Assembly (NCBI GenBank): GCA_010909165.1
Contig: VJWM01000223.1
Span: forward strand, 124,001-188,000
Length of the DNA: 64,000 nt
Direction: 5' to 3'
DNA from: Anthoceros angustus
Lineage: Eukaryota; Plantae; Anthocerotophyta
Shown here: piece by piece, positions 4,678-51,968 of the stretch
Layout: each line of letters begins with the position of its first letter
How positions within the stretch are numbered: the first letter of the stretch is position 1
Made by a program: the position numbers and the translations under genes
The notes under the pieces: model-generated
Told to the model about the DNA's origin: nothing
Database searches by the model: none
Seen by the model: the letters and a program-made list of their open reading frames with translations, nothing else

Positions 4678-5290
4678 ATCCGTCCAAGACTTCAGGGGAA
4701 TGTCATCCTCGTGGGTGCACAACATGACCACCAGCTCTTCCAGTCCTCCGTTTTAGTGGAGGACTCCACGGCCTGGGAAATCTATAGCCCATTGTAACAC
4801 TAGAGCAAATAATCCACCAAGGACTCTATCCACCTATCCATTGGGAGCTGGCTCGCCAAAAAGAACTTTGTGATCGATGCTAGGTCGCAAGCTAGAAGTC
4901 CACTTTGGGGATGGTACACAAGGCTTGCATTTCTTGCATGGTCCAGGTCCAGAAGACTTGCAATTCATGCAGAAGTAGGCGCTGTTGGGCAAGGCCACCA
5001 CAGCCATTGGTGCACCATTCAGTTTAGCAAGCCTCCATGGAACTCCATGCTCACTGATGCATCGAAGGGGTACCAAAAATTGAGCTCCTACGGCTATAGC
5101 GCTTCCGTGCTAAGAACGACCTGGACAACTTTCCTTGTGTCATATTTCGGACAGCGGGCCGTGCCTGTTGCCCCTGATTGTGTAGGAGCCACGAGCACTG
5201 TGTCTGGCTTTGCCCAACCAATTCTGAAGGAGCATGAACTCTAGGCTTGGCTAAGAGGTTGTTCTTCTAGCGGTTGCGGATGCGGACCAT
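4678..5290 (-). pseudogene. Decayed copy of the N-terminus (Cys motif and first trihelix helices) of the 27065-29382 gene
   Basis: ATG at 5290 in the same context as 27065. Reads ...NGAPMAVVALPNSAYFCMNCKSSGPGPCKKCKPCVPSPKW...GWIESLVDYLL*CYNGL*...EDDIPLKSWTD, with in-frame stops. Confidence 0.9.
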
Positions 5291-5829
5291 GAGTTAACTC
5301 TTGACCTGTCGAGCTTAATCCAAAGCCCAGCACCATGGGCCACACCAAGTAGCTAGGAATTAGCTGCACGTACAAACATCAAAATGTATTGTACGTACCA
5401 AAAACCATTCGATCACAGCAAAAGAGGAGAGGGGGTGTGGCATAAGCATAAGCAAGGAAAAACATAGAAAACATAGCTACAACATATGTTCACTACTCAC
5501 CCTAAAATTAGATAGTCCTTAACAAAAAAATATCTCATCAGAAACAACGGCAATGATCAAACAACGACAACAATCAGATATGAAACCAAACGACTCGGGC
5601 AACAAGTTGAGAGATAGGGTGAATCTACCAGAGCAACAAGCTATGAGAAGATATCAAGCGACTAGAGCAACATGTTTAGAGATGGGGCAAAGCGACTGGA
5701 GCAACAAGCTTGGAAATTGGTCGAAGAGACTGAAACAACATGCTAGTAGAAGAGATCAAGCGACTAGAGCAACAAGTTTAGAGATGAGGTGAAGCGACTG
5801 AAACAATAGGCTAGTAGAAGAGATCAAGC

Positions 5830-7170: not shown

Positions 7171-7239
7171 AAGTCCTTCAACAAAGATACGATAGCTCCA
7201 CTCCAATTCCCTAGATTTGTCTATAGTCTCTATGTCTGC

Positions 7240-8030
7240 AAACAAGATACTGAAAGGATGCAACCTCACGGCCTAGTAGAGCTTGTGCAAAGAAGTGCTG
7301 GGGGGCAACCTGAGGATGGATGGGCAACCTGCAGAAGCCATCAGCCCCACTATCAACTTCACCAGAGCATCCAATGCGACCATATCGTTGTGCTCCCGGA
7401 CGTTCTTCAGATCCAGTACCACAAAGTCATACTTGGCCCTCCCAAAGATCTGTGCAATAGTCGGCAACAAATGGCCATGCTGCTCCATCTGACCCTCGCT
7501 CTGCTGGCGCTTCTTGCACAGCTTGCACCTGCCATTCTGCGGTTCAAGATTGAAGCCCCCGCTGGTGCCGCGAAGAGATAGTGAAGATCCCTGGAGGATG
7601 CTATAGTGGCCGATGCCATCGTCGGCCGATCACGAGGGGCTCCCCCAAAGGAGCTTAAACTAGGGCCAGACCCGTTGGTAGCGTCTTGAGCTGGGGCAAC
7701 TATTCTGCTTGGAGGTGGTGCCAGTGCAGCAATGGTAACTATTGGGGGAAGCTGAGCATGTGGTGCAGAAGCCCAACCAGTGGAGAAGGTTGTGCATTAG
7801 TAGCGCCATGAGTGCGAGGAGCCCACGGAATTGGCCAGCCTCTTGGAAACTTGGCAGCTGCACAAACAAATCAGAGTCAGGTAAATCGGAAGCTGGAAGC
7901 TGGCCTTGGCATATGTAATATTCCATTCCAAAATCAAGAATACAAGCCAAACCAGAAACAAAATAATTAGCATATCCTGAGGAGAGGAGTGGTTCCAGTA
8001 TCCGGTGCAGGAGGAGTACTCCAAGAAGCT
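7240..8030 (-). pseudogene. Decayed copy of exon 2 end, intron 2, linker and N-terminal half of the HpcH-like domain
   Basis: LLPTIAQIFGRAKYDFVVLDLKNVREHNDMVALDALVKLIVGLMASAGCPSILRLPPSTSL matches the 28430 ORF; the nucleotide match extends through intron 2. Confidence 0.9.
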
Positions 8031-8039
8031 GGAGGAGAG

Positions 8040-10290
8040 ATCAAGCGACTGGAGCAAGAGGTGGCAAGCATGAGTGGAGCAATATGAGGCACGAGCGAAG
8101 CAACAGGAGGCAAGAGCAAAGCAATAAGAGGCAAGAGCAACAAGAGGCAATGGCAACAAGAGGCAAGGGCAACAAGAGGCAAGGACAACAAGAGGCAAGA
8201 GCAACAAGAGGCAAGAGCAACAAGAGGCAAGGTCAACAAGAGGCAAAGGCAACAAGAGGCAGGAGCAACAGGAGGCAAGAGTAGGCAAGAGCAAAGTTCC
8301 TGACTTCAATTTGATCTTCGGGATTGTCTATTTGAAGGATCAAGGTAATCTAACATGACTCTATAGTGGTTTAGGTCAAACGGAGAGGATTTCACTTTGA
8401 TCTTTCAGCGTGTAACCCATGCCTTCACTTTAATGTTTGGGCGGGTAAACTACGACAACTTCACCTTGATCCTTGGCAGGTAAATTACTTTAATGTTTGG
8501 GCGGGTAAACTACGACAACTTCACCTTGATTTTTGGCGGGTAAATTAAAACGACTTCACTTTGATCTTTGGGCCCGTTATCTAAGACAACTTCACTATGA
8601 TCTTTAGGCCCGTCAACTAAAACCACTTCACTTTGATATTGGGGCGGGTGAACTAAGACGATTTCTTTTTGAACTTAGGGTGAATAAATTAAGACCACTT
8701 AACTTTGATGCTTGTGCTCTTCAATGTCAAGTATACTATTTTCAGGTAACAAGTTAACCTATTGGAGAAGCAGTTTTGCAAGGAGAAGAAGGCGCCTAGC
8801 TCCGACCAGCCTCACTATGCGAGAATCAAGTTGCCATTGAGAGAGAGCAGAGCATAAGGACCTGGCGGTGAGCGGTGATCCTCTCGTTCAAGGTGGAATA
8901 AGCAATGTGCCCATTCTTCAATATTTCTTTCTGGTTTGGTTGGCTATTTGGATTGGTTTCGATTTCCTTCCATTCTGCCTCCATCTCTTATGTGTTTTAA
9001 TTTGTGGTGATTATATTCTAATATGAATTGTGTTGTCTCCGTATGCTTGTGCTGTTAAGCTTTGTGATTCGTTAACTCAAATTTGTACTATGTCAACATG
9101 CAACAACTTCCTAGCTACTTGGAGTGCATGGCAGTGTTGGGCTTCAAGCTTGGGATTAGGCTCAAACAAAATGGGAGTTAAATCATGGTGCGCATCCACA
9201 TGCGCAAGAAGAACAAACTTCTGGCCAAGTGATCAGAGTTCATGTTCCTAGCTTGTTCCATTCGTTTGGTCATGTCTTTGGTTGCTTGTGTCATTTGGTT
9301 GCTTTAGTCATTGTTTACATTAAAACATAAAAAAGAGTCATCTTAGTTTACCCTTAAACACAACGAGTTGTCATAGTTTACCCTAAAACAATAGTTTACC
9401 CTAAAATACTAGTTTACCCTAAAACACTAGTTTACCCTAAAACACTAGTTTACCCTAAAACACTTTATACTTATCCGAAATTGCCCTAAACTACTACAGA
9501 GTTATCTTAGTTTATTTTAAACATAATAGAGTTATTTTAGTTTAACTTCAACACTATGAAGTTATCTTAGTTTACTCTAAAACATGTCATATTATCGTAT
9601 CCCCATACCTCATAACAATATAGTTGATGTTGAGGAGCACAAACATCAAAGTGGTCTTAGTTTATCCGCCTTAAGTTCAAAGTGAAGTTGTCTTAGTTTA
9701 TTCACCCAAAGATCAAAGTGAAATCTTCTTAGTGTACGAGCCTAAAGATCAAAGTGAATTCATCGTAGTTGACCCTGCCCAAACACTAATTGAAGGCATC
9801 TCAAGTTTTTATAGTTTGCCCGTGCAAAAATCAAAGTGGATTGTCTCAGTTTACTCGCTGAAAAATCAAAATGAAGTCGTATCAAGATACGTGCCCAAAG
9901 ATCAAAGTCAAATCGTCTCCGTTTGACCTAAAGCACTAGAGCTAGTCATACTATATTATCTTAATTCTTCAAATAGATGACTTTGAAGACCAACTTGAAG
10001 TCAAGAACTTTGTTCTTGCCTCCTATTGCTCGGCTCTTGCCTCCTATTGCTCTTGGCTCTTGTTGTTTTTACCTCCGATTGCTCTTGTCTCCTACTGCTC
10101 GGCTCTCGCCTCTTATTGCTCGGCTCTCGCCTCTTATTGCTCTTGCCTCCTACTGCTCGGCTCTCGCCTCTTACTGCTCGGCTCTCGCCTCTTATTGCTC
10201 TTGCCTCCTACTGCTCGGCTCTCGCCTCTTACTGCTTGGCTCTCGCCTCTTATTGCTCTTGCCTCCTATTGCTCGGCTCTCACCTCTTAA
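8040..10290. repeat. Long imperfect inverted-repeat pair, about 700 bp each (8040-8750 and 9600-10290), including (gcaacaagaggcaaga)-type short-unit arrays
   Basis: Reverse complement of 8300-8400 (cgctgaaagatcaaagtgaaatcctctccgtttgacctaaaccacta...) matches 9895-10010. Short-unit arrays at 8040-8290 and 10015-10290 are in opposite orientation. Confidence 0.85.
8765..8960 (+). pseudogene. Fragment of exon 1 end and intron 1 of the trihelix-aldolase gene
   Basis: ttttgcaaggagaag...cctcactatgc.agaat...gagcggtgatcc...caag|gt...tttctttctggtttg matches 27700-27890; the donor GT position is conserved. Confidence 0.85.
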
Positions 10291-20689: not shown

Positions 20690-21750
20690 ACGTCGAGAAC
20701 CACCATGACGTTTCCTTGTGTCACATTGCGCCCAGTGTCCTGGGCTGCCCTCGCTGTCCTTGAGGGTGCAGGAGCCACGGACGCTGTCTCTAGCTTTGCT
20801 TACACCAATTCAGAAGGAGCATGAATTCCGGGCTTGGCTGGGAGATCTTTCTTGTTGCGCTTGGAAATGCGGACCATGATTCAACTCCTAGTCTAGAGTC
20901 CAAGCTTAATCCAAAGCCCAGATCCCAACACTGCCGATGACAACAGGTAGCTAGGAAGTAACTGCACGTCCATAAGGTACAAATCTGTAGTGGCGAATGA
21001 CAAACCTTGACAACATAAACATACGCGAACAACATAATTTATACAAATCTGGAAGATCTCAGTTACTATATCACACATTAAAATATTGTTATATTATTAT
21101 ACGAAAAATCAAAACATAGCAGAACAGGTGTAGGTGCAGGTAGAAAGGAAGGAGAGGGGGTGCGGCATAAGCATAAGTAAAGAACAACATACAAAACATA
21201 ATTATAATAGTCGTCGACTTACCCTAAACTACACAATCCTCAAATGTAAAATACCTCATCAAAAACCAACTTCGATGATCAGACAACTACAACAATCAGA
21301 TATGAAACCAAACGACTTGAGCAACAAGATAGGATATAAGGCAAAGCTACAAACAAGATAGGAGATCGGGCGAAGCTACCGGAGCAACAAGCTAGGAGAA
21401 GAGTCGCTTTAAAACCAAACGACTTGAGCAACAAATTGGGAGATGGGGCGAAGCTACCGGAGCAACAAGCTAGGAGAAGAGTCGCTTCGAAACCAAACAG
21501 CTCGAGCAACAAATTAGAAGATGGGGCAAAGCTACTAGAGTAACAGGAGGCAAAAGCAAAGCAACAGGAGGCAAAGGCAACCGGAGGCAAGAGTAACTGG
21601 ATGCAAGAGCGATGGGCGAGAGGCGGAGGAGAGCAAGAGCGATGAGGCGAGGCGAGCAAAGCGGTGGGAGGCAAACAATAAGAGGCGAGCAAAGCGGAGG
21701 AGGCAAGAGCAATAAGAGGCGAGAGCCGAGCCGTAGGAGGCAAGATCCCT
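20690..21750 (-). pseudogene. Copy of the upstream region, start codon and N-terminus of the trihelix-aldolase family
   Basis: ATG at 20877 gives MVRISKRNKKDLPAKPGIHAPSELV...; reverse complement matches 26250-27240. Confidence 0.85.
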
Positions 21751-23225: not shown

Positions 23226-23776
23226 GATAAGAATGATAGTGATGCACTGTGTGGAAGAGCACAATACAATCCGAACCGCCATGCGAAAGTGGTTCACAGG
23301 GGGAGGTTTGGTCTCATTTGTGTGGGACGAGACGAATATGCCCGATGACCAAGCTGGCTACGACATTGTGGAATACATCACAATAGGATGGGGTTTAACG
23401 TCTCGTAGCGAGAAGGCCAGAATTTCCAAGCTCCTGTATATTGTACAGGGTTCTTTCAACAAAGAGCATTTCTGTCATTGGGTATGACATCATGGTATCT
23501 ACCATAGTGAAGAAGTTGTTGTACACATCTTTCGATAAGTTGGTGGTCTGTGCTTATCAGAGTTCATTTTCAAAGGAGAGAGATTGGATTTTAGACGCCT
23601 ATACTGGGAGTGGTTCGACAACACTAGTTGCTCTGCTATATGGCTGCAATTGCATTGTTGTGGATGTAGACAAGCGCTGTACAAAGTTCATTCCTCAGAG
23701 GATCCATGGATATGAAGTTCTGCCAGACGCAGAAGCGAAGTTGTACCACGAGCCACATTGCCGGGGTTCTACCTAG
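23226..23776 (+). pseudogene. C-terminal part of a beta-class N4/N6 DNA amino-methyltransferase (N6_N4_Mtase-like), frameshifted
   Basis: SFSKERDWILDAYTGSGSTTLVALLYGCNCIVVDVDKRC matches the C-terminal SAM-binding motif I region. Upstream SFVWDETN...VEYITIGW resembles the central W-x-K/E motif region. No DPPY motif seen, probably truncated at the CRE junction. Confidence 0.72.
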
Positions 23777-24311: not shown

Positions 24312-24494
24312 ACAATTCTTGCTATTAAAAATGGACTAAAATTGCAATACGAAGGAATAATACCCACCCCCAAAAAATTAAAACATGCTTAAATATGCAA
24401 TATAGTTAATGTCCAGCTTTGCACAAGAGAGTTTTTGATTTGCGGAAGCGGGTTCGTATATTCAACCGCTTCAAATATTATCGTGTTCCGAAGA

Positions 24495-26600
24495 GGGAGA
24501 GCCACAAGAGCCCAAATTTTGGTACCCTTGCGACGCCTTGGTGAGCATGGAGTTTGACCGGATGCCTGGCAGAGTGAATGGCATAACGAAGGTCGTGTTG
24601 GCCTTGCCCAACAGCGCCATTGCAACATGAATTGTAAGTCAACTTGTGTGTTGTAGTTGTGATTTGCATGTTGTTTTTTGCTTATGCTTATGCCGCACCT
24701 ATCTTCTTAATTCCTTTTTGCCTCCAACTCTTATGTGCTCTAGTTTGTGGTACATATTTTTGATCTGGATTGTGTTGTCTGCGTATGCTTATGTTGTCGA
24801 GCTTTGTGATTCATTAAGTCAGATTTGTACCATGTGAACGAGTAGCTATTTCCTGGCTACTCGGCAGTTAGTGCTTGGCTTTGGGCTTGGGATTAGGCTC
24901 GAACAGAGCGGGAGTTAAATCATGGTGCGCATCCACAAGAGTAAGAAGAACAATTTCCCGGCTAAGCTCGGAGTTCACGCTCCTAACTTGTTGGTCCAGT
25001 CGTTTGGTCATGTCTCTGGTTGCTCCTCTCGTTTGATTGATTCAGTGGTTATTTGACCCTAAAATATTAAAATTGTCATGTTAATTTACCCTTAAACACT
25101 ATTATTAAGCTGTCAAAGTTTACTATAAAATATTAATTTACGCTAAAACATTAGTTTACGCTAAAACATTAGTTTATCCTAAAAAATTACTTTACCCTAA
25201 AATATTAGTAACCATAAAACACTTCAGACTTATCTTAGATTGCCCTAAACTACTATAGAGGTACATATTCTAGTTTATTCTAAACACTGCAGAGTTATTT
25301 CAGTTTAACCTAGACACTATGGAGTTATCTTAGTTTACTCTAAAACATGTCATATTATCGTATCTACCATACCTGAGAATAGTATAGTTGAGGTTGAAGA
25401 GCACAAAAAATTAAGTTAAGTGGCCTTAGTTTATATGCTCAAAGTTCAAAGTGAAGTCGACTTAGTTTACCTGCCCAAAGGTCAAAGTGAGGTGGTTTTA
25501 ATTAAAAGGCCTGAAGATAAAAATGAAGTCATCTTAGTTTACCCGCCAAAGATCAAAGTGAAGCTGTCTTAGTTTACTCGTTAAAGATCAAAGTGAAAGC
25601 ATTTTAGTTTACCCCCCAAAGATCAAAGTGAAGTCGTCTTAGTTTACCCGCTAAACAACGAAGTGAAGTCATTGTAGTTTACCTGCCCAAACATCAAAGT
25701 GAAGGCGTCTCGGGCTTTTGTAGTTTACCCGCCTAATCATCAAAGTGAAGGCGTCTTGGGTTTTTGTAGTTTACCTATGCAAAAATCAAAGTGGATCGTC
25801 TTAGTTTAGGGTTTTTGTAGTTTATCTATGCAAAAATCAAAGTGGATCGTCTTAGTTTAGGGCTTTTGTAGTTTACTCGTGCAAAAATCAAAGTGGATCG
25901 TCTTAGTTTAAGGTTTTTGTAGTTTACTTGTGCAAAAATCAAAATGGATCGTCGTAGTTTAGGGTTTTCACAGTTTACCCGTGCAAAAATTGAAGTCTTA
26001 GTTTAGGGTTTTTGTAGTCTACCCGCGCAAAAATCAAAGTGGATCATCTTAGTTTAGGGTTTTTACAGTTTATCCTTGTAAAAATCAAAGCGAATCGTCT
26101 TAGTTTAATGCGTAAAAAATCAAAATGAAGTCATGCTAGGTTACGCGCCCAAAGATTAAAGTGAAATCGTCTCAGTTTAACCTAAACCACTGGAGAGTCA
26201 TGTTGAATTACCCTAATCCTTCAAATAGACGACCTTGAATAGCAATTGGCCTTGGACTTTGCTCTTCCCCCGGTTGCTCCGCTCTTGCCTCCTGTTGCTC
26301 TTGCCTCTTGTTGCTCCTACCTCCTGTTGCTCTTGCCTCTTGTTGCTCCTACCTTCTATCGCATCGCTTTGCCTCCTCTCTCGCCTCCTGTCGCTTCGCT
26401 TTTGCCTGCTCTCTCGCCTCCTGTTGCTCTTGCCTCCAGTTTGTTGCTCTTGCCTCCGGTTGCATCACTTTTGCCTCTTGTTGCTTCGTTTTGGCCTCCT
26501 GTTGCTCCGCTCTTGCCTCGTGTTGGTTCGCTCTTGTCTCATGTTGCTCCACTCAGGCGCTTGCCACCTCTTGCTCTCGTCGCTTCATCTCTTCCCCTAG
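24495..26600 (+). repeat. Family module: N-terminal coding remnant (24495-24640), duplicated start region (ATG 24922), AT-rich arrays and gcctcc/ttgctc short-unit array
   Basis: EPQEPKFWYPCDALVSMEFDRMPGRVNG..VLALPNSA; 24690-26600 is collinear with 8970-10290. Confidence 0.85.
25780..26070. repeat. 51-bp tandem array, most units containing TTTAGGG
   Basis: aaaaatcaaagtggatcgtcttagtttagggtttttgtagttta... at 25781, 25832, 25883 and 25934. Confidence 0.88.
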
Positions 26601-27064
26601 GTTGGTGCTCCGGTAGCTTAGCCCCATCTCCTAATTTGTTGCTCGAGTCGTTTGGTTTCATATATGATTGCTGCAGTCGTTTCATTATCGAAGTCGGACA
26701 AGGTATTTTACTTTTGAAGTGATTATATAGTTTTATAATAAGTCAATATATATTCAAATTATATTTTATATATTATAATACTTATATCATACCACTCTCT
26801 CCGTCCTTCTACCTCCACCTCTATATTCTAATTTTTTGGTACAATGTTCTGATTTTTGATAAAATATATTGCGATCCGTATTGGGATAACTCATATCTTT
26901 TAATCTTCTATTTATTGTGTGGTTCAGGCATGTTTATGCTATCAAGCTTTGCCATTCGCTAACAGAGATTTGTACCTTGTCAACGTGCAGTTACTTCCTA
27001 ACTACTTGTTGTGGCCGACGGTGCTGGGTTTCTGGATTAAGCTCGGACAAATCAGGAGTAAATC

Positions 27065-29382
27065 ATGGACCTGCCGGCCAAGGCCAAGCCCGGAATTCAT
27101 GGCCCGTCAGAACGGGTGGAAACGAAGCCAGAGACGGCGCCCGTGGCTCCTGCACCGTCGGAGGCAGAGGACGCTGCCCAGGACGCGGGGCGCAATGTGA
27201 CACAAGGAAACACACCAGGAAACGTCAAGGTGGTTCATGGCGAGGAAGCGCAAGAGTCACAGGAGCCCAAATTTCGGTACCCCTTCGACGCCTCCGTGAG
27301 CATGGAGTTTGAGCGGAGGCCTGCCAGTGTGAATGGCGCACCGGTGGTGGTGTTGGCCTTGCCCAACAGCGCCTATTGCAACATGAATTGCAAGTCTTCT
27401 GGACCTGGACCATGCAGGAAATGCAAGCCTTGTGTGCCATACCCGAACTGGACTTCTCGCGATCCGCCGTTTCACAAAGTTCTTTCTGGCGAGCCGCTCC
27501 CGGTGGACGGGTGGACGGAGTCCTTGGTGGATTACCTGCTGCAGTGTTACAATGGGCTGCAGATTTCCCGGGCCGCGGAGTCCTTCACCGAGGTGGAGGA
27601 CTGGGAGGAGCTGGCGGTCATGTTGTGCATTCACGAGGATGACATTCCCCCGAAGTCTTGGACGGATGCTCGTGCCAAGTTCAACCAATTGCAAGCCCGG
27701 TTTTGCAAGGAGAAGACGGCGCCCAACTCCAACTGGCCTCACTATGCCAGAATGGTCGCCATTCAGACAGCGCAGAGCACGAGCGCCCGGGGGGCGAGCG
27801 GTGATCCCCGCGTCCAAGGTCGGATGCAACGTGCCCATATTTCAAAATTTCTTTCTGGTTTGTTGGCTATTTGGATTGCTGGTTTTGGATTGGATTCCCC
27901 ATGTGAACGCTAGCCAGATTCCCATTTTTCCTGACTCTGGCCAGTCTGGCTTGAAACGAGTGTTTGTGCAGGTGCCAAATGCGCAGGATACAGGCCGATT
28001 CCGCAAGCTCCTCCAGCCTCTCGGACTCCTCCTGCACTGGGTACCGGTGTGATTCCTCTCCTCAGGATATGCCAGTTGTTTTGTTTCTGGTTTGGCTTGC
28101 ATTCGTGGTTTTGGAATTGAATATTACGCATGCCAAGGCCAGCCAGCTTGCAGCTTCCGATTTAGCTCTGCTTTGTTTGTGCAGCTGCCAAGTTTCCAGG
28201 AGACAGGCCGATTCCGCAGGCTCCTCGCACTCATGGTGCTGCTACTGCACAAGCTTCTCCACCTGGTCGGGCCCCTGCCCCTGGTCCCCGTGCTCGGCTT
28301 CCTCCAACAGTTGCCATTGCTGCACCGGCACCACCTCCAGGCAGAACAGCTGCCCCAGCTCAAGGTGCTGCCCGCGGGGCCGGCCCCACTTTAGGCTTCT
28401 CCAGGGGAGCCCTTCTTGGTCGGCCGGCGATGGCATCTGCCAGTGCAGCATCCTCCAGGGGAGCTTCACGTTCTCTTGGCGGCGCCAGCGGGGGCTTCAG
28501 TCCCGAACCGCAGAATGGCAGGCGCAGGCTCAGGCAAGAACTGGCCAGCAGGAAAACGTTATGCAGAGGGCCGCTGTATGGAGTGGTTTCGGCCATCTTG
28601 TCGCCGACTATTGCCCAGATCTTTGGGAGGGCCAAGTATGACTTTGTGGTACTGGATCTGAAAGACGTCCAGGAGCACAGCAAAATCGATGAGGACGCAT
28701 TGAACGCTCTGGTGAAGCCGATAGTGGGGGTGCTGGCTGCCGAAGGCTGCCCATCCATCCTCAGGCTGCCTGCCAGCACTTCTTTGCGCGAGGTCGCCTG
28801 GGCCGTGAGCTTGGATCCGTCCGGTATCTCGTTTGCAGACATCGAGACTCTCGACAAAGCTATGGAACTGGTGCTAAGCTGTCGGCTCCTCGATGACGGT
28901 GGTTTTTCCCTCGCCGCCACCAACAGCAACAGGCTCTTCATCAGCGTGGAGCTTAATTCCGTGACGGCTTTGAAGCATGGTGTCGGAATTGCCCTAATCG
29001 AGGGCGTCGACTGTGTCCAAATTCTGCCCATGGGGAAGCTGCGGGATGACCGTGTTCCTACTGAAAGTAAGCTCCACAACCTGCACCGGTACGGTCGCGT
29101 TGCTGCTGCCAACCTTCCACTCTACTCACAGTGTTGCTGCATGTGGCAGAGGACCACCTGCTCAATGTCTCCACGAAGATGGTGGAGGCAGATGTTCTGA
29201 ACTGCATTCGTCATCGGAGGACACCCGTCTATCTGGCGGGTCTCGCACATGCCCAGGACACATCGGAAACCCTGATGGGGTCAAAGTACGACATGGTTTC
29301 AGGAACCTCGGACTTTCTTCTCTTGAACGATGCTGCTGTGGCGGATGTCGCCAAGAAGGTCCAGAGGCGTCCGGGTCGTTAG
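27065..29382 (+). CDS. Predicted 645-aa fusion protein: Cys-rich motif, trihelix (Myb/SANT-like) domain, Pro/Ala linker, and HpcH/HpaI aldolase-fold domain lacking metal ligands
   Basis: Exons 27065-27818, 27972-28040, 28185-29066 and 29150-29382 total 1938 nt. All three introns are GT-AG and phase 1, and there are no internal stops. Trihelix: WTESLVDYLL..EDWEELAVML..PKSWTDARAKFNQLQARFCKEK..SNWPHYARM. Aldolase: YGVVSAILSPTIAQIFGRAKYDFVVLD..EH..SILRLP..GVDCVQ..YLAG..YDMVSG..DAAVADV. The domain calls are firm; the splicing is inferred. Confidence 0.72.
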
Positions 29383-29574
29383 AAGCTGGTGGGACTGTCA
29401 CTGGAACACTCAGAACAGACTGTTTAGATGTAGGTTTGACATGCCCCTCGCATTGCATCCTGCATCGTGAATTTGGCTTGGAACACATCTGTCCTCGAGG
29501 TGGGCTTCCCTCCAAATTTCGTGCACGATTTCGGTTTCGTCTGAAAATTTTCAAATTCGACACCCGGGAGGGGA

Positions 29575-30330
29575 GACTCAGCCCCAGCCCCGGCGGGGAG
29601 GCTCAAGAGCCACAGAAGCCCAGGCCAAAATTTTGGTACCCCCTCCGAGGGGACGCCTCCGTGAGCATGGAGCCCGACCGGATCCGGAGGGCCAGGCTGG
29701 ATGGCACACCGGTGGCCGTGTGGACCTTGCCCAACAACCCCAACCTTCGTCTCGAGACCATACCCGAACTCGACTTCTCGCCACCCACAGCTTCTCAAAT
29801 TTGTTTCTCAGCTGAAAACGCAGGATTGGACGCACCCCTTGATGCATCGTCCTGGATTACCTCGACCCGCTGCAGCTCCAGTCACAGTGGCTGCCCCGAA
29901 TCAAGGTGCTGCCAGCAGGGCCGGCTCCCCTTCAGGCTTCTCCGTGGGAGCCCCACCTGTTCGGCTGGCAATGGCCACTGTAGGATCCGGCAGGAGGGCA
30001 GCGCGGGCTCCATTCCGAATCCGCAGGATGGCAGGAGGACGCCCCCGAGCCCGGCGGCCATAAGCATTTGAACACTCTGCTGCAGCTGGTATTGCTCGAG
30101 CTGGCTTCCCAGGGCTGCCCATCCGTCCTCAGGCTGCCCGCCAGACCTTGCTTGGTGAGGAATGCTGCTAGCACGGATGTGGCCAAGCGCCCCTCTCTAC
30201 CCATCTCCGTAACTGTGGAGCCCCTTTTTGGTAGAAGCTGAGGAGGTGGCAGGCACTGCGACAGTTGCAACTCGGTACCAGCTGAGCTCGCCGGACAGGG
30301 CCCTCAGACTATTTAGATGCGCTTCGTTTG
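29575..30330 (+). pseudogene. Tandem, internally deleted copy of the fusion gene
   Basis: EAQEPQKPRPKFWYPLRGDASVSM..LPN, linker AAPNQGAASRAG..GFS, PNPQDGRR, and QGCPSVLRLPA fused directly to NAASTDVAKR. The 3' flank 30290-30420 resembles 29420-29550. Confidence 0.85.
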
Positions 30331-31744: not shown

Positions 31745-34700
31745 TCAGGAAGGAAACAACGCCTTCTGCTCCCGCCGTTCGTTCCAGTTCAAGCACCTCA
31801 CCAAGCTGGAAAACCAGTCATTTGTTTGATCGGACTTGTTCACCGTGGGAACAGGGTGTTGGCTCATGCCGATGCGAACCGAGTCTCCCTTCCTCAACTG
31901 CTGCCTTCTCTTACCATCGAAGGAAACCCAGGCATTGTTGCGAGCGTCAGATGGAACCTGGGGAACATGGCCAGGTTTCAGCCAGCATCCCAGAAACAGT
32001 GTGCACGCTAGATCTAACGTAACTGGACCTTCTCTCACCTTCAGTTCAAGCAAAGCAGAGTCCGGCAGGATCACGGGGCGGAAGGAAAGTGAGTGCGGGC
32101 AGATTGGGGTAAACAGCATGCAGGGCACGTTTGGGTGAACCTACAGTGTCAGACAGTGGAGCACAAAAGTGTCAGATGAGTCGACAAAGCTGCTACCTGG
32201 TGAGACGACAACATAAACACATGGACATAGATTTGTACCATAGAACCGCCAGCGGCAGTTGAGTAAGCTGTACTGCCGGTAGGTGTGGCCACTAGTACGC
32301 CATCAGCTTGTACCTGTGCGACATTACCAAAATGTGTGGGTGGGTGATCACAGTGCACCACCCTCAACGTGCTGAAAGTGGAATGCCTCGACGCACAAAT
32401 ACCTTGGTTATGAGACGGTTCCGCTCGTAACACTCTATCTTGGAGAGATAAGGGTTGGAGCCGCGATCCACCACAACCTCGTTCAAGACTTCGAACACTT
32501 TCCCAGGAATAGCCCTGCCTTCTCTGAAGAGCTCGCAACGCAACCTCATCCGAAGGGTAATGTAGACACCCATCCCGCTGTTCCCATGTATGATTGCCCG
32601 CAATGCTTGCCTGAAATTTTCAAACTGCTCGACAACGCAACAAAGGAATCAGCTAGTCAGCATAAAATCTACAGGCTCAATGGCAGACTGGGTGTGTCAA
32701 GGGTGTCTTGGAAATACGCACCGGATGTGCTGTGAGAAAGCCCAAAGATCCCAGGTTGAAGGACACAACTGGTGGTACAGCATTGCGAAACAGATTGGAT
32801 GCATGGAGGATTACACCATCTCCACCTAAGCAAATCACAAAGTCCACCCGTTCATGAAGCTCTCTGCATAGATCACAATGCTGATTAGCAAACCTTTGCA
32901 GAAACAACGAGATGGTGCCCAGGAAAGGTTTGGATACTTCGTGCGGAAAAAAGATTTGGCAGTGGACAGGGTACGTACCCGGCGTCCTGATTGTAAAAAG
33001 TTTGCACATAACCATAGCCAGGAGACCTTGCAAAGAGGTCATGTGCTTCAGGCTCCACCATAACATTCATCCCTTCATTATGGAGAAAGGTTGCAACCTA
33101 AATCAACCCCACCACATCATAAGTTGAGAGCTACCCATACATAGTCTGCGACTGAACCAACCTGAAAGTGATACCCACCTGCTCTGCTTCCTCCATCAGC
33201 TCAGTGCCCAGCTTTTTAAGCAACAGGACAGTCTTTGGAGGCGTTTTCCACATGAGCATTTGCTGTTGAGTGCTTGGATGTGTAAATGCTAGAGTCGACT
33301 CCATTACCCTTTCCCTGGTACACGAGAAGCCATCTGTTCTCACAAGATACATTTCTGCCTTTTTCCTGGACTGCACTCGTACAACGCCGGTTGTGGATGC
33401 ACACATGTCCCCTTGTACTGGGACTGGGTCGTCCGCATCATCTAGGACCTGGTAATTGTCACCAACTCCCACGAGTGCTCCATTGCGAGATGTGGTTGGG
33501 AAACTAGCCCCGTTTCCATTGGTGCCTGTGAGACTGTCAGAGACTTGTCGATTGCCCCCCGATTGCTCAGCACCAACACTTGTGTCTGCATTGACTCTTG
33601 GGCCGGCAAAACCATTCTCAGACCGTTTGCTCAAGCTCCCTGTCACGCTGGACACTGCATCTCCAACAGGCGAACCAGCTATCGGAATCCCAGGACCCGA
33701 CGGACCCCATTTCCCAGCTGCACCAGCTATATTCTCCGAGTTTGTAAGGACCTTGCTCTTATCGGACCTTCCTGCTGAACTACCTTGTGAAGGTTTACCA
33801 GGTCGCAAAGGAGGCGATATCTTCCTTTCGAGAAACGTCGCCATACCTTTTTTGGTGAAAGCATCTGGACCAGGTCTTTGAGCCTCAAATGGACTTGCAA
33901 CCATCCTAAAGGGTGACCCTTCTGCCACAATGGTGGGAAAGGCTCCATTCCCTGCTGTAGTCAGTGAGTCAACTACGTCATCCCTACTACCTGACTTAAT
34001 CCGCTCTATTTGCTCCCCAGCCACAGAGGTATCCCTCCCAGAGCTTGTGTCGATGACCTCAGAAAAGATTGCCTCACCTCCAGGCTGAGGGCCAGTTGGC
34101 AGCTCCATTGCGGATACACCGTTCACCCGTTCTCCATCAACTCCCACCGTGATATCAAGACTGCTACCCGGGGGCCCCTGCAATGCAAATTCTTTCCATC
34201 TAGCAACCATGGAGCACGGTCTTCTAACCCCTCTCCGACTGAAGAGCACCACCTCATCGTCCTTCATCCTTCCCACCAGGCCCGCGAACTCCTTGACCTG
34301 GTCCCTCGATGGAGCAGCTCCTGCAGCCACGGGAATTCTAACAACCTGCACCCTTCCAGAGTCTGCAGCGCTATTCAAAGCTGGGTCAAGCAGAAGGCTA
34401 CGCTCCTTGCCATCTCTGAGATCAATCAGCAACTTAAACCCTCTCTGCAGGAGCCATTCCAAACCCGTCTCAGTCATCTGGCCCCCTCTCCAGAACCTGC
34501 ACAACGTAGGCTCAGGCTTGCTTTGCCCTCTACCAGACACCAAGTCGACCACAGCAAAGTTCGGAATATCTCCAGGGCTGGGGGCCCCTTCAGCACGAGG
34601 AGCTCCAGCATCCACACACACATTCCTCAGTCTATCCAGACACCGATGCACAGCGCCCTCCGCATTCCGGTCCACGCTCAATGCCATCAGGGTCGTGAGT

Positions 34701-35535
34701 CCCACTTGCAGAGCATCACAGCACTTGAGCATCTCCTCACGGAATTGAGCAACAGGATCGGGGCTCACTTTCCCCCCGTTCCCAAATCGACCTAGCTTCC
34801 AACTGGGCACATCGACGAACTTCCCCCCGAACAGCTGCTCTCTGCCGTCGTCCAGAACCCAGGCCATCCGAGCGAGTCCCACCACCACTGCCTCCTCCAC
34901 ATCGGGAACTTTCACCAGCAGGCCGCCGGAGTTCAAATTGAGAACAGCGTCCAGAACAGTAGCATGCAGCTCCTCCGCTCCTCTGTAGATCCGGCAGAAG
35001 GCCTCAACAGAAGCGAGCCCACCCGGAGCCCGGCCGGAAGTGGATTCCCTACACAACTCCTCCTGCGCCTGCAAACAAGAGCAGCCCAGCCCGTGCATAC
35101 ATTCCCAGATTCACCTCCACCTGCCAAGAGCATGTCCGGACGAAGGCACGACGCAGGCACTCACGTACACACCTGAATTCGAATTGCCTCGTCCTCGGAC
35201 ACAGGATTCCAGGGCTCATCGTCAGCTTGTGCTCCCCCAGCGTCAGCACGCACCCTGTGGCCCCGAGATGTACAGTGAAGCTTGCGCGGCAGCAAAGAGA
35301 TCCTCCAACAATCCCACTCCCTTTCATACTGCCTGCTTCTGCCGCCGTTGAGCTTCCTCCGTCGGGCTGTGAGAAGCGGCTCGCAGGAGGCGTGGGAGGA
35401 GGAACAGACGGACGGCCGATTGCGAGGGGCCAGCTCCGAGAATGCACAGGTGGAGGAGATTGGAGAAACCTTGGCTGCGGCAGAGCAGCACACACAGCGG
35501 GAGGGAGGAGGTCGGGCCAGGACGGCGTCCGCCAT
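31745..35535 (-). CDS. NADK2: Chloroplast NAD kinase 2
   Basis: Transit-peptide-like exon 1 from ATG 35535; VEAFCRIYRGAEELH, FWRGGQ, MCASTTGVVRVQSRKKAEMYLVRTDGFSC, DFVICLGGDGVILHAS, VLNEVVVDRG, ATPTGSTAYSTAAGGSM, LNWNERREQKAL. Confidence 0.95.
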
Positions 35536-41400: not shown

Positions 41401-44400
41401 CAGCGGCCTTTGTCCGGGACCGCAGCTCTGCCTTCACTCCCGCATTAGTCGTTACAACCTCAAGGAGACCCATAACCTGTACTCCACAACAAAACATAAA
41501 TAACGTAAATTATGAGTTAAACATGAACGAAAGCATTATGAACACAAAAACTGCAGCCTACCTGCTCCAAGTGGGCACTGCTTCTTGAGTAAAGGGGCTG
41601 ATTCAGCAGTTTCAACAGCAAAATCAGGGGGACTTCCCCTTTCCTTCTCCGCTCAGTAACCTCCACAGCAACAGCTCCATCCACAAGCTTTGCTTTGCCT
41701 TTCTCCTTCTTCAACTCATTTGATTTCTGCTGCTCTGGTGTTCCAGAAGAACCATTGACAGGATCCAAATACAGTAGCAGACTCGCCACAGCAGAATGGT
41801 TTCTGGCCAAGTACGTCAGGATCTCCAGAACTCTGCGTGACACAAGGGGTGGAACACCTGCAACAAACACAGGATATTTGAATCAAAATCAAACTTCCAA
41901 ACACTTCGAAAACGTAGGTCCAACCAGGATCTAGAAGTTTGGAGGGCAAGTGGTAAAGGAATAACTACTACCATCAGATGATTGTGATCGAGCATATACA
42001 ATGTTCCATTGGCAACCATAGAGTCCCTGCGATGGCGCTCCACCAGCTGTCCCAGTAGACCCGACCTCAGCCTCTGGCCGTAGCATGTCCAAGAGCAACT
42101 GGAGCAATGTTACTCGCGTAACACTGTGAGCGCAGAGATTTAGAAGCAGGCGTTGGAGGAGTCCCTTTCCAAGGGGCTGTACCTCAGCAAACAGGAAAAC
42201 AGGAATTAGTGAACATTCCTGGAAGTCAGAGAACTTGTGAAAGAAGAACAAGTTGTTGGCCAACAAGGCGCACAAGGAGCAACCTGTGCAAGCCTTAGGA
42301 GGCGCAGCATTGCCTTCAAAGCTGCTGTATCTACAAGAGGTTTCCCTTCTGCTTCCTTCATGCGTCCACTCCCACCAATAGGTACACCTGTTCTTCGTGC
42401 AGTCTGAAGAGCTTGAACTCCGCCTATACCCCGTTCAATTCCAGAAGGCCCTATACCAGGACCAACACTTATGTTGTTCCTTCGATTAGCAATCCTGTTA
42501 GCTCCTCCATATAGGCCCCTTGCCTGATACTGATTCATTGCCCGTTCACGCAGCAATTGAGCTTCCGCAAGGAGAGCAGGAGGCAGAGCAGCCAACACAG
42601 CCTCAGAAGATGTCAGAAGCACCTGCACAATCAAGCAATATGTTAGCAGCATAAGCAGGAGAACTTTCACATTTGAAACGTTCCAATGTCTGGCTCTGAC
42701 AAGGAAACCACACAACAGTATATCCATACACAGGTTCAACGGCCCTGCAATCACCCTCACCTCTTCCCGAAGCTCAGCTGGAAAGGTGGCAATAATAGAT
42801 GCACTGTCCATGTCCACTGGCTGGCCCTCTATCTGCTGTGCCTGAACAATCCTTTGTGCTCGCTGTTGTGCAAGTACTTCTGCTTGAATATCTGGAGGCA
42901 AAGCTGCTAAAAACTCAGGATCAATATCCTCAGAGGGGGGCGGCATGTGATTCACAGGTCTCGCCACCTGTGTCTGCTGAGAGGCCAATACTTCAGCTCG
43001 CAAGTCCTCAGGAAGAGCCTCAAGAAAAGTAGGATCTATGGAGTTAACAGCTGCATTCCCACCATCCCCACTCCTAGTCTCCACACCAACCACTTGGGCA
43101 TCTTCACCAGTGGTTGTGTTCACAACGGGAACTGCAGCATCCACTGTCATACCCTCACTACCATTACCAGCAGCTCCAGCTGCCTCCATGTCCTCATCTG
43201 CATCACCATCCCCTACTCTTGGATTACTACTCTCTGCTCTTGGAAGACCTTCAGCTCCTCCAGCAGAAGGCACATCTCCAGCACTTAGCCTGTCTTGTCC
43301 TCCTTGCCGATCCCCTTCATCATGACCATCGGCACTACCTATTTCTACCTCCAGACTACGAAGACTTTCCCCTACAGTAGCTCCACTGCCTCCACTATCC
43401 TGACTACCAGCTTCTGTATCTTGGACTGCTGGCTCATCCCTGTTCTCTTGCATCTGTACATCCAACCCGGAATGTCCTGGTCCTATTGGCACTTGCTCGG
43501 GTGGACTCTGCTCACTGGTTTGAGGGGGATCAGATGCATTGCTGCCGTGACCCACACCGATATCTCCATCTGAGCTTTGAGGCTCTGTATGTACATGCCC
43601 TTCAAGGCCTTCATTTACACTTCCCTCTGTTGCCCTAGAAGGGGCCTCTCCCCCAGCCACCCCAGTAGCTTCCACATCCTCAGGGACATTAGTATCTGCA
43701 GGGCCAGAACTTGCAGGCACGTTCACAGCAGCAGTAATCCCAGCAGGTTGTGAATCACCTGGAGATAGCAGACGAAGCTGTGAAATAAACTGCTCCTCAA
43801 TAGCAGATGCAACCGCAGCAGCCTGTGCCCCAGCTTGTGGCTGTCCATCATCTGTCCAGCTACTCAAACGACCATCAATTCGACCACCCCTTCTACCCAT
43901 CAGATACACTGGGTCCATTGAGAAGTCAAGGAGAGGGGGAGGAGCAACACCCCTTTCCCCAAAGAGCATATCACCGGCTTGATCTAACATTGGTCCATCA
44001 TACATGTAAAAGTGAGTCACATCAAACCCACCACCCCCCAACATAGCTTCTGCATCCCTGACCAGAGAAGTAGTAGGCCACATAGTTTGTGAAATAACTC
44101 CTGCTAAGCCTGGCCCTGCAGTGGGTACAGGCCGAGTTAGAAGAGGGTGGTTGAAAGCACCACCCCGTTCTCCAACAGGCCGCTCTTGGAAAGTCCTGTA
44201 TGGAGGAGGCCTCCTTCCTCGGTTATCAGCGGCCCCTTGACGACGGAAAGAGCCAAACACGTCATCCATGTTCATAGCTTGGAAGGGATCACCTGGAAAA
44301 TCCACTACACTGGTACCACCTGCTTGTCCCAGAACCTGGACATGATTCAGTCCAGTCAAGCCATCTCGCCAACGGACCTCAATGACACGATCTGCCTGCC

Positions 44401-47400
44401 AATCATCCTCCTCATCTTCTTCCTCAACCATGTCTTCCTCGTATTCATCCCCTATCCCAAGCTCTTCCTGATCCTCAACATCCGTGTCAGGAGGGGACAA
44501 ATGCGGGACACCTTCACCTTCCATGTCGTCCTCATCCTCCTCCTCCTCCTCCTCCTCCTCTTCATCTTCCTCATGTTCATCAGCCTCATCTCCATCCATG
44601 TCGTCTTCTTCCTCCTCATCTCCAACATCATCAGCCACATGCTCCATCCTATATGCCATTTCTGCCATTTCTGCAGCAGCATCCTCCACATCCTCGTCAC
44701 CTGCTTGCATAATATCCTCTGCAAGTGCATCCAGCTCAACACCCAGGCGAGGCACTCCATCCACACTCCTTTCCATCCTTGTGTCTTCATCCATTTGCTC
44801 ATCTCTAGCACTGACTGCAGTGACAGCACCAATAAGACGATTTGCCTCCAATGTTGCCTGCTCAACAGACATTTCTCTCATCCCATCATCACTTCCCTGT
44901 TCTGGCAGTTCAGTTTGTCTTACTATGTCTGCCAAAATCACAGAAGGCCCAGAGCCTCTAACCTCCCCAGCCCGACCAACTGCCGCAGTTCGTCTCTGGC
45001 TGCCACCATCAGGACCACCAGAATGTTCACCAGCACTGGCAGATCGAGTCAGGGCTTCCAGTGATTTCAGAACACAATTTACAAGCTTTGGAGCATCAGG
45101 ATGATCAAGATCAATAACCTGCAGTGTGCTTGTCAATGCTTGCACCATCCCAGCTTCCATCATCGTCTTTGCCATGTCTGAGGAAAACCCTGGAGCTTGT
45201 GTGTTGCCTGATGAAGGGTGAGATGACAGTATAGAACTCACCAGTTCCACAAAAGCCCGAACTTTCCTGTTCGGCTGTTGCAGGCCCCTGGATGCTTTCA
45301 TTTCTGCACCCGCTGCTGCTGCAGACAGGGCCCTTGCAATCTCCACAACAACACGCCTTCTCCCTTCTCCTGAACGGACACAAACAGCCATCAGAAAGTA
45401 GCCTGCTTTATCTGATAGCTTCTCCCTCCACTCATCTTCATTCAGCTTCTCAGCTCCCTTGCTCCCTGCAGTAGGAAGTAGCCTGTGGAGTACATGATAA
45501 AGCAGGCCTCCATGGCCAATGGCATCCACTCCTCCTTGTGAAGGGCCTCGACTTTGACTGCTTTCAGAATCTCGTCGGAGAACAACGCTCACTGCTGAGA
45601 AGTACATCAGCAAAACCTCAGTCGTAAGCTTGAGAATGAAAGTAACCTTAGCAAGAGCAGCTGCACCCTCCGAGACAGTCTCCCCATCCTGTTTCACTCC
45701 ATCCGTAACTTTCGCTTTGCCCTTATCCCTGGGTGCCACATCGTCAACTTCCATTGCAGTTGCCGAACCTAAGCTGCTATCCTGAGTTGCATGATCACCC
45801 TCAACCTCTCCTGAAGGATAATGAAGAACAACTTCAAGCAACTGATCTATTACTTGAGAAAAACTGTGAGGAACTTTCTTATGACTCTTCGAAGACTTGC
45901 TAGATGGCTCTGGCAATTTTGTGCTGCCATCTGCTGCAGGCAACGAAGATCCAGCTTCAGTAAATCCTCCCTGGTGGCTATTCTTCACTCTTTCTCTCTC
46001 CTTCTCACCCTTATCCTTCTCTTTATCCTTCTCTTTCTCTCTGTCCTTCTCCTTTGCCAGGACAATAACAGGCCTTCCTGCAATGGACTCTAGCTGACAC
46101 ACAGCACTAGCAGCCTGCATGAATATTCCAGGATCTCGGGACACTACTGGAGCCATAGATGTCAAGAACATGCGAGGTGACACGCGTCCATTATGCCGAG
46201 CAAGAATAGCAACCAAAGTATGTCTTATCTCAGATTCCATAGCCTGCTGCAAGGTATGAGGATCCTCCAGGAGATGGCGAATAATGGCGGCAGCAACACT
46301 GTCAAAGCCAGAAAACAAGCAGTTCTGAGGCAAGGCCAGTAGAGCTTGCAAGCCTCCCGCATCAAGAAACTGCATTGCTACAGGGTGTGTCTTGGTAAGC
46401 CTGGCACACAACTGAAGCACAGCTTGCACAGCACTTGTTGGCAGTTGCAAGTATAAAAAGCGGCAACAAAGGGACATAGCCCTTTTCTGTTCACCATCTG
46501 TCATGTAACCTGTGGGATTTCCCAATATTGCAATAAAAGGATTGAGATCATTTTCCTTCACACCAGGAGTATCCGAACTGGGTGCATGAAGCGGAACTGC
46601 GGACCCTGACACAGCAGTAGTGCTTGCTGTTGCTGCAGTTGTTGTAGTGGAGGCATCAGTATTAATCTTCGGCTTGTATTGCAACATATGATCAAGAACC
46701 AGTAGCAGGGCACTAACCCATTTGGGCACATCAACAGGGTGATTCTCAACCTTACTGGGTGTGAAGTTCATCAATGTGTCCAGTGCTATATCCACAATGC
46801 CATTGTCAGCAGCGATCTCCCTAGCTGTGCTGTCCTCACTCAGCACCAAGGCCAGTGTATGAGCGATAGTTGACAGGGGACTTGTGTCACTAGCAGCATC
46901 CTCAGAGTTTTTCAACTGCTTCAACTGCTGAATCAAGTAAGATATGACCCTTGGCCGATCTTGACCCTTGTTTCGGTTGCACATGGTGACAAGCAAGTCT
47001 GTCAGAGGAAAAGCAACAGCATCTGTATTCTGCAGTAAATTCATGCACGTTGCTAACATGTCTTCAATTGGTGGAGCTTGTGGACAATCTTCCTCAGCAG
47101 GGACCTCCTTAGCCTTCCCCGCAGTGTCCTCCTTTACTGTGCCCTCACCACCACTAAGAGACAATGCAAGTGCACGAGCAAGTTCATCTTCCTCCTGAGC
47201 AGCTTCTTCTGGATGGCTGAAGAGCCATTCCGTGGCCATCTCCACACTATTGGCATCAACCCTTCGTAAAGCCTCCTCTGCTCTAGCCCTTGAGAAACCC
47301 ATTTCCACAATCATGGAAATGCAAGTTTCATCTGGCGGAGGTCCCATCAAGCGAACCCCTGACCCAGCAGCGCCTGTAGTTCTTGGGCCCTTCACATCTC

Positions 47401-50400: not shown

Positions 50401-51968
50401 GGTCAGGGTTCGACTGAAGCAGCACTGTGAAAGCAAGGAGGCGGATACAGATGTACTGCCGCCTGCTACCCAAAAATGCGAACGCCCTTGCAAACCGGAG
50501 CCTTGTCAGCAGGGAGAACCTAAGATTTGCAGGCACTGTGTACTGATCAACCAGCTGCTTCAAAAGCTCAAGATCATTTTCAGGTCGGAGATGCAAGTCC
50601 GGAATATGAATAACTTGTAGACCTGCCGTGGCCTCCAGTTCCCTTCCCAGCTCATGGCCATCTGCATAGAACTCAAAATGAAGTGTGGAGCCCAGTCTGC
50701 AAGCATCCCCATCACATCCATTTTCAACTGCACATGCCAGAAGCCCAAGGCCCTCTTCCTTTCCTCCCCATCCCTGGGACAATGAGAAGAGACGAGCATT
50801 CAGTGCAGAGTCTCCATGCCAGCGCATGGCACGATTCGCTTGCACTGGCTTCTTCACAAATGCTGCCAAAGTTTGCAGCGCTGCTATGACAATCTCTGGG
50901 TCCGTTGAGGCAAACAATGATGATAAATGCTGCACACAGGCATAAACACGATTACTCGTGCAATTTCCCGCCTACATCTACAAAAAAGACGACCAAGCAC
51001 CTCCAGATTACTCTTCTCCGCCTACCTCATTTGAGTTATACAAGTACTTATTTACACAGTTCTCGAGTATTATACGAGTAACTCGAAGTATCTGCAGAAC
51101 TGCTGACTTGGGGAACGGACTGTCGCCTTCCAGAAAGTCACCGTCCAGCTGCAGGTCCCTTCTAGGTTTGACAAACTTCTCAAAGAAGGATTCAAAGTGA
51201 TTGAGAAGGTCAACCCAATGATGAAAGTCGCCCTGAAGACCGTAGCAGCAGATGCATACAAGGAAGCAAGCGGTGAGAACTAAGGAGCTCAAATGTTGGA
51301 CGCAAAAGCCCAATACCAATGCGATAGCGGTACAACCCTAGTGATGCACTCTCACCTTTTCATAGTCCCAAAAGAACTTGGCAAGAGGGACATCCATAAT
51401 CTCCAGAGGTGTGCTGGTCACACTGGTGATGAAACTCCTCACTTTCGGCGGCTGCCACCACCAGCATACACACGTCAAATCCCCAATACAGCAAAAAGGC
51501 AGCTGTCGCTGAAAAGCTGCAACAACCGGGCAGCTCACCACCGTGCATCAAACACAAGGGATTGAGCCTGCAGACTGGCACACTAAGCATGCCACACAGT
51601 TCTAAGTCTTATCCCAGATAGGACAGGCAGGCTGGCACAAGAGAGTGAAAGCAGCGATTGTTCAATCTGCTCGGCATGTTGCAGCCGCATGGTGGGGATC
51701 CTGGAAGCGGCCTGGGAGTAGATCGAGATCCCGGCCCGACCCAAATTGCCACCTAACGAGTCCACAACCAGCCAGAGCAGAAGGCGGCGATCCTGTTGCT
51801 AATCGCAGGCAAGAAGAGCATGCAAATTGGAGATCCAAGGCCGCGCCGCGAGCTCAGCAGAGGGAGCAGGACGTTCTTTGGCATGCGGCATCGCAAAATC
51901 CATCACGAGAATGAGAAGCAGGAGAATTAACATACCGCATCCACGCCGCGCTTTTTCTTGGCCTTCAT
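38424..51968 (-). CDS. UPL1: HECT E3 ubiquitin ligase UPL1/2 (HUWE1/Tom1 type)
   Basis: Exon 1 [11 protein letters not shown] (51968-51936), then [21 protein letters not shown], an exon of over 8 kb with DUF908/913-like and UBA regions ([15 protein letters not shown]), [10 protein letters not shown] repeats, and HECT ([14 protein letters not shown]...[39 protein letters not shown]). Confidence 0.97.

Follow-up and report, generated by a model that had tools for sequence, protein, structure and literature searches.

A candidate fusion of a Myb-like domain with a probable pseudo-aldolase barrel in Anthoceros angustus

We analysed a 64,000-nucleotide stretch of the Anthoceros angustus genome (contig VJWM01000223.1, positions 124,001 to 188,000 of the forward strand; hereafter the window) in which an initial annotation, made from the sequence alone, had noticed a possible fusion gene at 27065-29382. 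More likely than not, this is a real spliced coding gene whose product combines a Myb-like DNA-binding domain with a dead HpcH/HpaI aldolase barrel that would act as an oligomerisation scaffold. The encoded protein consists of a conserved N-terminal region, a Myb/SANT-like domain, a disordered linker of about 160 residues rich in Ala, Pro, Gly and Arg, and a (beta/alpha)8 barrel. This architecture has been kept across deep divergence. It is a new combination of two known kinds of domain, and the sole other example found is an unannotated predicted protein, P0001. The copy present in the window is a very fast-evolving, weakly expressed paralogue that lies amid its own broken copies.

Structure of the fusion gene and its relative P0001

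When the four exons listed in Table 1 are joined, they form 1938 nt, that is 645 codons and a stop codon, with no internal stop; an in-frame TAA at 27059-27061 precedes the ATG of exon 1. The open reading frames (ORFs) 27065-27913, 28430-29200 and 29131-29382 are present in the ORF list as described. Thus, the 645-aa stop-free frame of the initial annotation, together with its three phase-1 GT-AG introns and its symmetric 69-nt exon, was reproduced by joining the coordinates. None of 20,000 shuffles of the spliced coding sequence was free of stops (mean, 21 stops), so the whole frame cannot be a product of chance. Exon 2 could be skipped with the frame unchanged. Together with intron 1 it constitutes a tandem duplicate of intron 2 and the start of exon 3 (repeat D10, 27961-28037 versus 28174-28250, 77% identity), and it is this duplication that gave rise to the symmetric exon.

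Transcription and splicing were examined with reads of the same sample, which comprised a single RNA run of small size (X1) and a DNA run (X2). One RNA contig, 299 nt long, aligns to 29011-29066 and 29150-29392 with zero mismatches and omits exactly intron 3. The 29066/29150 joint is present in X1 and absent from X2, which confirms one of the three proposed junctions. Compared with positions 26900-29500 of the window, DNA contigs of X2 carry 12 one- or two-base deletions, all of them in runs of C, G or T, as well as two C>T changes. The X2 version of the gene would be frameshifted, and one of the two data sets must contain systematic homopolymer errors. We provisionally take the window version as correct, since its frame stays homologous to its relatives throughout.

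The strongest argument for a single fused protein comes from P0001. When 1.84 billion representatives were searched exhaustively by HMMER, using the barrel as query, only 23 matches were obtained. The best of them, P0001 (597 aa, aligned at residues 302-498), is the sole long protein in the set, the remaining matches being ordinary HpcH proteins of about 150-430 aa. The ORF that encodes P0001 (259-2052) runs without interruption on a 2307-nt contig of a different public sequencing run and has AT-rich, transcript-like flanks. P0001 is identical to the spliced window protein at 216 of 534 aligned positions (40%), from the N-terminal motif through the last helix, and the alignment crosses all three exon junctions of the window gene. 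Mainly because of this end-to-end match, we read the fusion as one old protein. The two-domain architecture that had been proposed for the window thus recurs in an independent single ORF, with Pfam scores of 24.8 bits for PF13837, at the position that corresponds to the match in the window protein, and 72 bits for PF03328.

A word-indexed search with full-length P0001 retrieved canonical HpcH proteins only and no further fusion member, and the family looks small, rare and lineage-restricted. Among the papers searched, none was found that pairs a trihelix domain with HpcH, or an HpaI aldolase with a Myb/SANT-like domain, in keeping with the earlier statement that no described protein with this architecture was known.

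A second member of the family seems to exist in the same organism. RNA contig record 2 of X1 (3528 nt, depth 68) touches the window at 28744-28787 by a short match, and the flanks of this match read LPVLHALAS and VVRRAVDLG, which is P0001-like rather than like canonical HpcH, and closer to P0001 than to the window copy. Judging by these flanks, record 2 is probably a conservative P0001-like member, expressed far more strongly than the window copy. We read this as two types of paralogue in the organism, one conservative and well expressed and the other fast-evolving, the window holding the latter.

Table 1. Positions of the fusion gene, its predicted domains, its degraded copies and neighbouring genes in the window
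Feature	Position	Strand	Details
Exon 1	27065..27818	+	Residues 1-251 plus 1 nt; aligns with P0001 N-terminus at 44% identity
Predicted intron 1	27819..27971	+	153 nt, GT..AG, phase 1; AAG/GTCGGA..GTGCAG/G
Predicted exon 2	27972..28040	+	69 nt, 23 codons, symmetric
Predicted intron 2	28041..28184	+	144 nt, GT..AG, phase 1; TGG/GTACCG..GTGCAG/C
Exon 3	28185..29066	+	Linker rich in Ala, Pro, Gly and Arg, up to about residue 395, followed by the greater part of the HpcH-like barrel
Intron 3	29067..29149	+	83 nt, GT..AG, phase 1, RNA-confirmed; AAA/GTAAGC..TGGCAG/A
Exon 4	29150..29382	+	Last strand of the barrel, C-terminal helix (YDMVSG..D..LL.DAAVADV), stop codon
Conserved N-terminal region	27269..27508	+	Residues 69-148; motifs YPFD.SVSME.ER...VLAL.N and PYP.W..RDP.F.KVL.GE
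Cys-rich 19-residue segment CNMNCKSSGPGPCRKCKPC	27377..27433	+	Residues 105-123; C-x3-C-x8-C-x2-C-x2-C
Myb/SANT-like trihelix-type domain	27512..27760	+	Residues 150-232; Pfam PF13837
HpcH/HpaI-like barrel, pseudo-aldolase (most likely)	28520..29358	+	Residues 387-638, interrupted by intron 3
Pseudogene fragment, 5′ untranslated region (UTR) and exon 1	4678..5371	-	76% nucleotide identity; stops, frameshift
Pseudogene fragment, exon 2, intron 2 and exon 3	7190..8037	-	80% nucleotide identity; stop, frameshifts
Pseudogene fragment, end of exon 1 and start of intron 1	8750..8955	+	Inverted orientation
Inverted copy of upstream region, 5′ UTR and first 49 codons	20710..21350	-	Inverted repeats I1, I2, I4
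Exon 1 fragment	24490..24640	+	Residues 54-112, 85% nucleotide identity
Collapsed degraded tandem copy	29592..30154	+	Repeats D6, D7, D8, D12
NAD kinase gene	31745-35098	-	Convergent with the fusion gene
HUWE1/UPL-like E3 ubiquitin ligase gene	42206-50935	-	DUF908, DUF913, UBA, UBM domains

Predicted domains and active site of the fusion protein

The C-terminal domain is clearly, by sequence comparison, an HpcH/HpaI barrel of land-plant descent. Exon 3 alone scores 22.9 bits against Pfam PF03328 (HpcH_HpaI; cut-off 25). A profile built from 16 canonical plant and bacterial HpcH proteins matches the spliced protein at 113.9 bits over residues 387-638, with a best score of 6.7 bits among 2000 shuffles. 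Since this match covers profile positions 68-319 of 331, the domain can be said to follow the family end to end, as was first suggested. The fold was tested on the P0001 barrel only, for which an AlphaFold2 (AF2) model had a predicted local distance difference test score (pLDDT) of 85.5. Its best Foldseek matches were 1dxe (GarL) and the HpcH/HpaI structures 2v5j, 4b5w and 7et8, with template modelling scores (TM-scores) of 0.7-0.8 (0.71-0.78 for 1dxe and 2v5j). The P0001 barrel matches the fold of the bacterial class II pyruvate aldolases, among them HpaI/HpcH (2v5j, 4b5s, 7et8), GarL (1dxe) and YfaU/RhmA (2vws), at TM-scores of 0.7-0.8.

In a maximum-likelihood tree, the barrels of the window protein and P0001 form one clade with support of 100/99. 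This clade lies inside the land-plant HpcH group, with Mesotaenium outside, and its branching order relative to Marchantia, Psilotum and seed plants is left open by the tree. Compared with canonical land-plant HpcH/HpaI proteins, the C-terminal 250 residues of the fusion are homologous end to end, while the N-terminal presequence of the former is replaced by the Myb-like domain and linker. The fusion barrel also contains an RNA-confirmed intron, whereas the canonical HpcH gene of Bertholletia excelsa (L002 1501-2559; 1059 nt, 352 aa) has none; as the latter is intronless, comparison of intron positions is uninformative.

The N-terminal half is less readily assigned. Residues 69-148 are conserved among the window protein, P0001 and the degraded copies, and have no match in Pfam. 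Within this region, the segment CNMNCKSSGPGPCRKCKPC is absent from P0001 and present in the degraded copy at 4678-5082; its cysteines could form a small metal-binding knuckle. The region downstream gave a near-full-length match of exon 1 to PF13837 (Myb_DNA-bind_4; profile positions 4-88 of 89, E-value 8.2e-6) at 26.6 bits, just under the curated cut-off of 27. W150, W180, W199, F206 and the RAKF motif of the window protein are all kept unchanged in P0001. The AF2 model of exon 1 has helices at 152-168, 177-187, 196-217 and 224-240, all of low confidence (pLDDT about 41-58). Language-model (Atlas) features of both proteins led to Myb/SANT-like clusters at 0.83-0.88, which we treat as a lead only. 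The trihelix domain of the initial annotation, there taken as SIP1/ASIL-type, is thus only partly supported, with scores near the threshold in both proteins.

In the W...W...W / RAKF pattern of this one domain, the fusion protein resembles trihelix/Myb_DNA-bind_4 factors and the wider Myb/SANT-like clan (MADF, Myb_DNA-bind_3 and 5); its score lies slightly below the curated cut-off, and no known trihelix protein with an HpcH domain came up among the papers searched. Word-indexed protein searches gave no match for the exon 1 product, retrieved only P0001 itself for P0001 residues 1-215, and revealed no unfused parent of the N-terminal half.

We then compared the active site of the barrel with that of characterised enzymes. 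In AbHpaI the metal is held by E151 and D177, together with pyruvate and water molecules; a Glu-His pair assists, as does an Arg that is R72 in AbHpaI and R70 in HpaI (PMC8560999). The catalytic Arg contacts the substrate in HpaI, pyruvate is bound through the metal, and the enzymes form hexamers to whose stability helices 1, 2 and 8 contribute (PMC8560999). This Arg (R70 of HpaI, R75 of GarL) is kept in both fusion proteins, as R468 within ILRLP in the window protein and as R399 in P0001. The two metal ligands of canonical land-plant HpcH/HpaI, Glu and Asp, are replaced by N and G in the window protein and, in the multiple alignment, by S and S in P0001.

The position of the metal Glu (E153 of GarL, E151 of AbHpaI) corresponds to N532 of the window protein, where the alignment is ungapped on both sides and E530 stands at the position of a conserved Gln. 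In P0001 it corresponds to S474 in the multiple alignment, but E472 pairs with E153 in the pairwise alignment with 1dxe. As the window alignment has no gaps here and the Glu residues of the two proteins are homologous, the S474 reading, with one deletion in P0001, appears more economical. The position of the metal Asp in GPxDL (D179 of GarL, D177 of AbHpaI) is G558 in the window protein and S498 in P0001, assignments that are anchored by the adjoining VDCVQ motif.

As for the Glu-His pair, the window protein has EH within 8 extra residues, which makes its equivalence uncertain, and P0001 has EY. Compared with canonical land-plant HpcH/HpaI, the window copy lacks about 21 residues of the substrate loop that links strand 4 to helix 4, and the part lost would be the loop that completes the active site of the neighbouring subunit. 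Relative to bacterial class II pyruvate aldolases, the fusion barrels keep the catalytic Arg and the helix-8 region of the hexamer and are without the canonical octahedral metal site. At least one metal ligand, and probably both, would thus have been lost in both proteins, and the barrel is most likely a pseudo-enzyme. The substitution of both ligand positions in the window protein is in line with the initial description of the barrel as apparently catalytically dead.

We propose that the N-terminal Myb/SANT-like domain would bind DNA and that the dead barrel would serve mainly as an oligomerisation scaffold, which would render the DNA-binding domain multivalent. A scaffold role is favoured because helix 8, on which the hexamer of the enzyme family depends, is better conserved in the fusion barrels than any other segment, and because canonical substrate binding requires the metal that has been lost. 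Regulators built on enzyme folds include CtBP (dehydrogenase fold) and Gal80 (oxidoreductase fold). The concept, a metabolic-enzyme fold reused in transcription control, is the same; the fold is different and there is no homology, and in the fusion protein the enzyme-derived domain is covalently joined to the DNA-binding domain.

If functional, the fusion would be a clean natural case of a metabolic enzyme fold that turned into a pseudo-enzyme and was recruited into a DNA-binding protein, and the plant trihelix/Myb-like repertoire would gain an architecture that had not been described. With one other cluster among the 1.84 billion representatives, its impact is likely to lie within one plant lineage unless wider sampling differs. 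The conservative and the fast-evolving paralogue constitute a matched pair for studying how a pseudo-enzyme domain evolves after fusion.

Alternative explanations

A number of observations weigh against a functional fusion gene with a scaffold barrel. RNA coverage of the gene in X1 is limited to its 3′ end, which leaves junctions 27818/27972 and 28040/28185 without RNA support. The 81-codon linker taken alone is open by chance in 21% of shuffles, and 103 other single-intron GT-AG joins from exon 1 to the aldolase frame are also stop-free, so that an open join is weak evidence for these two junctions. In both proteins the Myb-like domain stays below the Pfam cut-off. For exon 1, the AF2 model made from a two-row alignment was too poor for a fold search (pLDDT 40.7), and a two-sequence N-terminal profile gave only chance-level matches among solved structures. 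A Glu two residues before the lost metal-Glu site is common to both proteins and could conceivably aid metal binding. Finally, the window copy itself shows marks of rapid change, to which we return below.

The uncovered junctions, the weak donor sites (GTCGGA and GTACCG) and a linker that is open in all three frames are what one would expect if two separate genes had been misjoined, one for a 282-aa Myb-like protein with its stop at 27913 and the other for an aldolase-like protein with its ATG at 28430. P0001, however, has both parts within one ORF, the degraded tandem copy keeps the N-terminal part, linker and barrel in the same order, and in the paralogue at 7190-8037 conservation extends over the linker, upstream of 28430. 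We therefore rejected this explanation, to which we attach very little probability.

Hardly any more credit, and if anything slightly less, is due to a chimera of fragments captured by a transposable element, such as a Pack-MULE, a Helitron or an element of the kind that carries a Harbinger-associated Myb protein. Myb/SANT-like domains are also found in Harbinger-type elements, and the 64 kb of the window include at least six fragments that travel with the same satellite-like repeats on their upstream side. Yet the fusion is common to a 40%-identical protein and hence old rather than recently captured, the copies retain introns and upstream DNA like segmental duplicates, there is no transposase or other element ORF within about 8 kb, and the inverted repeats merely copy the gene's own 5′ end. 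Capture by a transposon was rejected on these four grounds.

A more serious possibility, although still an unlikely one in our estimate, is that the window copy is a duplicate without function that is decaying into a pseudogene, that only the P0001-like member works, and that the frame and the weak transcription are leftovers. Its terminal branch in the tree (4.48) is more than ten times that of P0001 (0.39), and its RNA depth is only 3.7 versus 68 for the P0001-like contig. Differences between the window copy and the fragments are flat over the three codon positions (0.176, 0.182 and 0.177), a pattern that is uninformative and does not demonstrate purifying selection. The loss of about 21 residues from the substrate loop, the 8-residue insertion beside the EH motif and the location in a repeat-rich zone crowded with broken copies of the gene fit the same picture.

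On the other hand, 645 codons and three splice sites are intact in the window copy, whereas the copies that are 76-80% identical to it have acquired stops and frameshifts, and intron 3 is correctly spliced. With P0001 as the outgroup, the window copy agrees with it at 96 of the sites that differ and the fragment at 16 (P-value = 4e-15), counts that are possibly inflated by frame-shifted stretches and two overlapping matches; the ancestral residue is thus kept six times more often in the window copy. At face value, the window copy is better preserved than its local duplicates. At 162 further sites the window copy has the same state as the fragment, and P0001 another, so most of the divergence from P0001 predates the local duplications.

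Keeping to a functional fusion gene, one may ask whether its barrel, rather than being a mere scaffold, senses a small molecule such as a 2-oxo acid and thereby gates the DNA-binding domain. The substrate-contacting Arg is kept in both proteins, both have the Glu near the old metal site, and the barrel is conserved along its whole length. Pyruvate, however, binds through the metal, whose Glu and Asp ligands are replaced here; the window copy lacks a loop at the periphery of the active site; and the pocket residues of the window protein are not the same as those of P0001. We thus consider a ligand-sensing role less likely than an oligomerisation scaffold, and on the whole doubtful.

Equally speculative is a broader version, in which the gene would belong to a conserved land-plant DNA-binding family whose metal-free HpcH barrel, as a metabolite-sensing or hexamer-forming module, couples 2-oxo-acid or central carbon status to transcription. 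If true, this would be a class of transcription factors not described before.

Degraded copies, repeats and neighbouring genes

The window contains at least six degraded pieces of the fusion gene (Table 1). In the tandem copy downstream, pieces of the N-terminal motif, of the linker and of the barrel follow the gene's own order. Several fragments are accompanied by the same satellite-like upstream repeats; because intron sequence and upstream DNA are kept, the fragments are segmental duplicates and not retrocopies. The inverted repeats correspond to copies of the 5′ end of the fusion gene itself, and a Pfam scan of ORFs between 17.9 and 35 kb of the window revealed no transposase.

The DNA directly upstream of the gene, at 25424-26179 and 26235-26700, contains tandem repeats whose periods are 35, 46 and 51 nt, as well as a CT/GC-rich repeat block. 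Copies of this block stand beside paralogue fragments at 8036-8438, 9805-10280 and 21266-21745.

One neighbour, the NAD kinase gene, encodes a PTP-NADK phosphatase-like domain (PF22741, 132.9 bits) at the N terminus of its product, within a first exon of 655 aa. An ORF fragment at 23441-23776 resembles the C-terminal end of N6_N4_Mtase (PF01555), at 26.4 bits versus a cut-off of 26.7. The E3 ubiquitin ligase ORF runs uninterrupted for 2909 aa, an unusually long exon for a plant-like genome.

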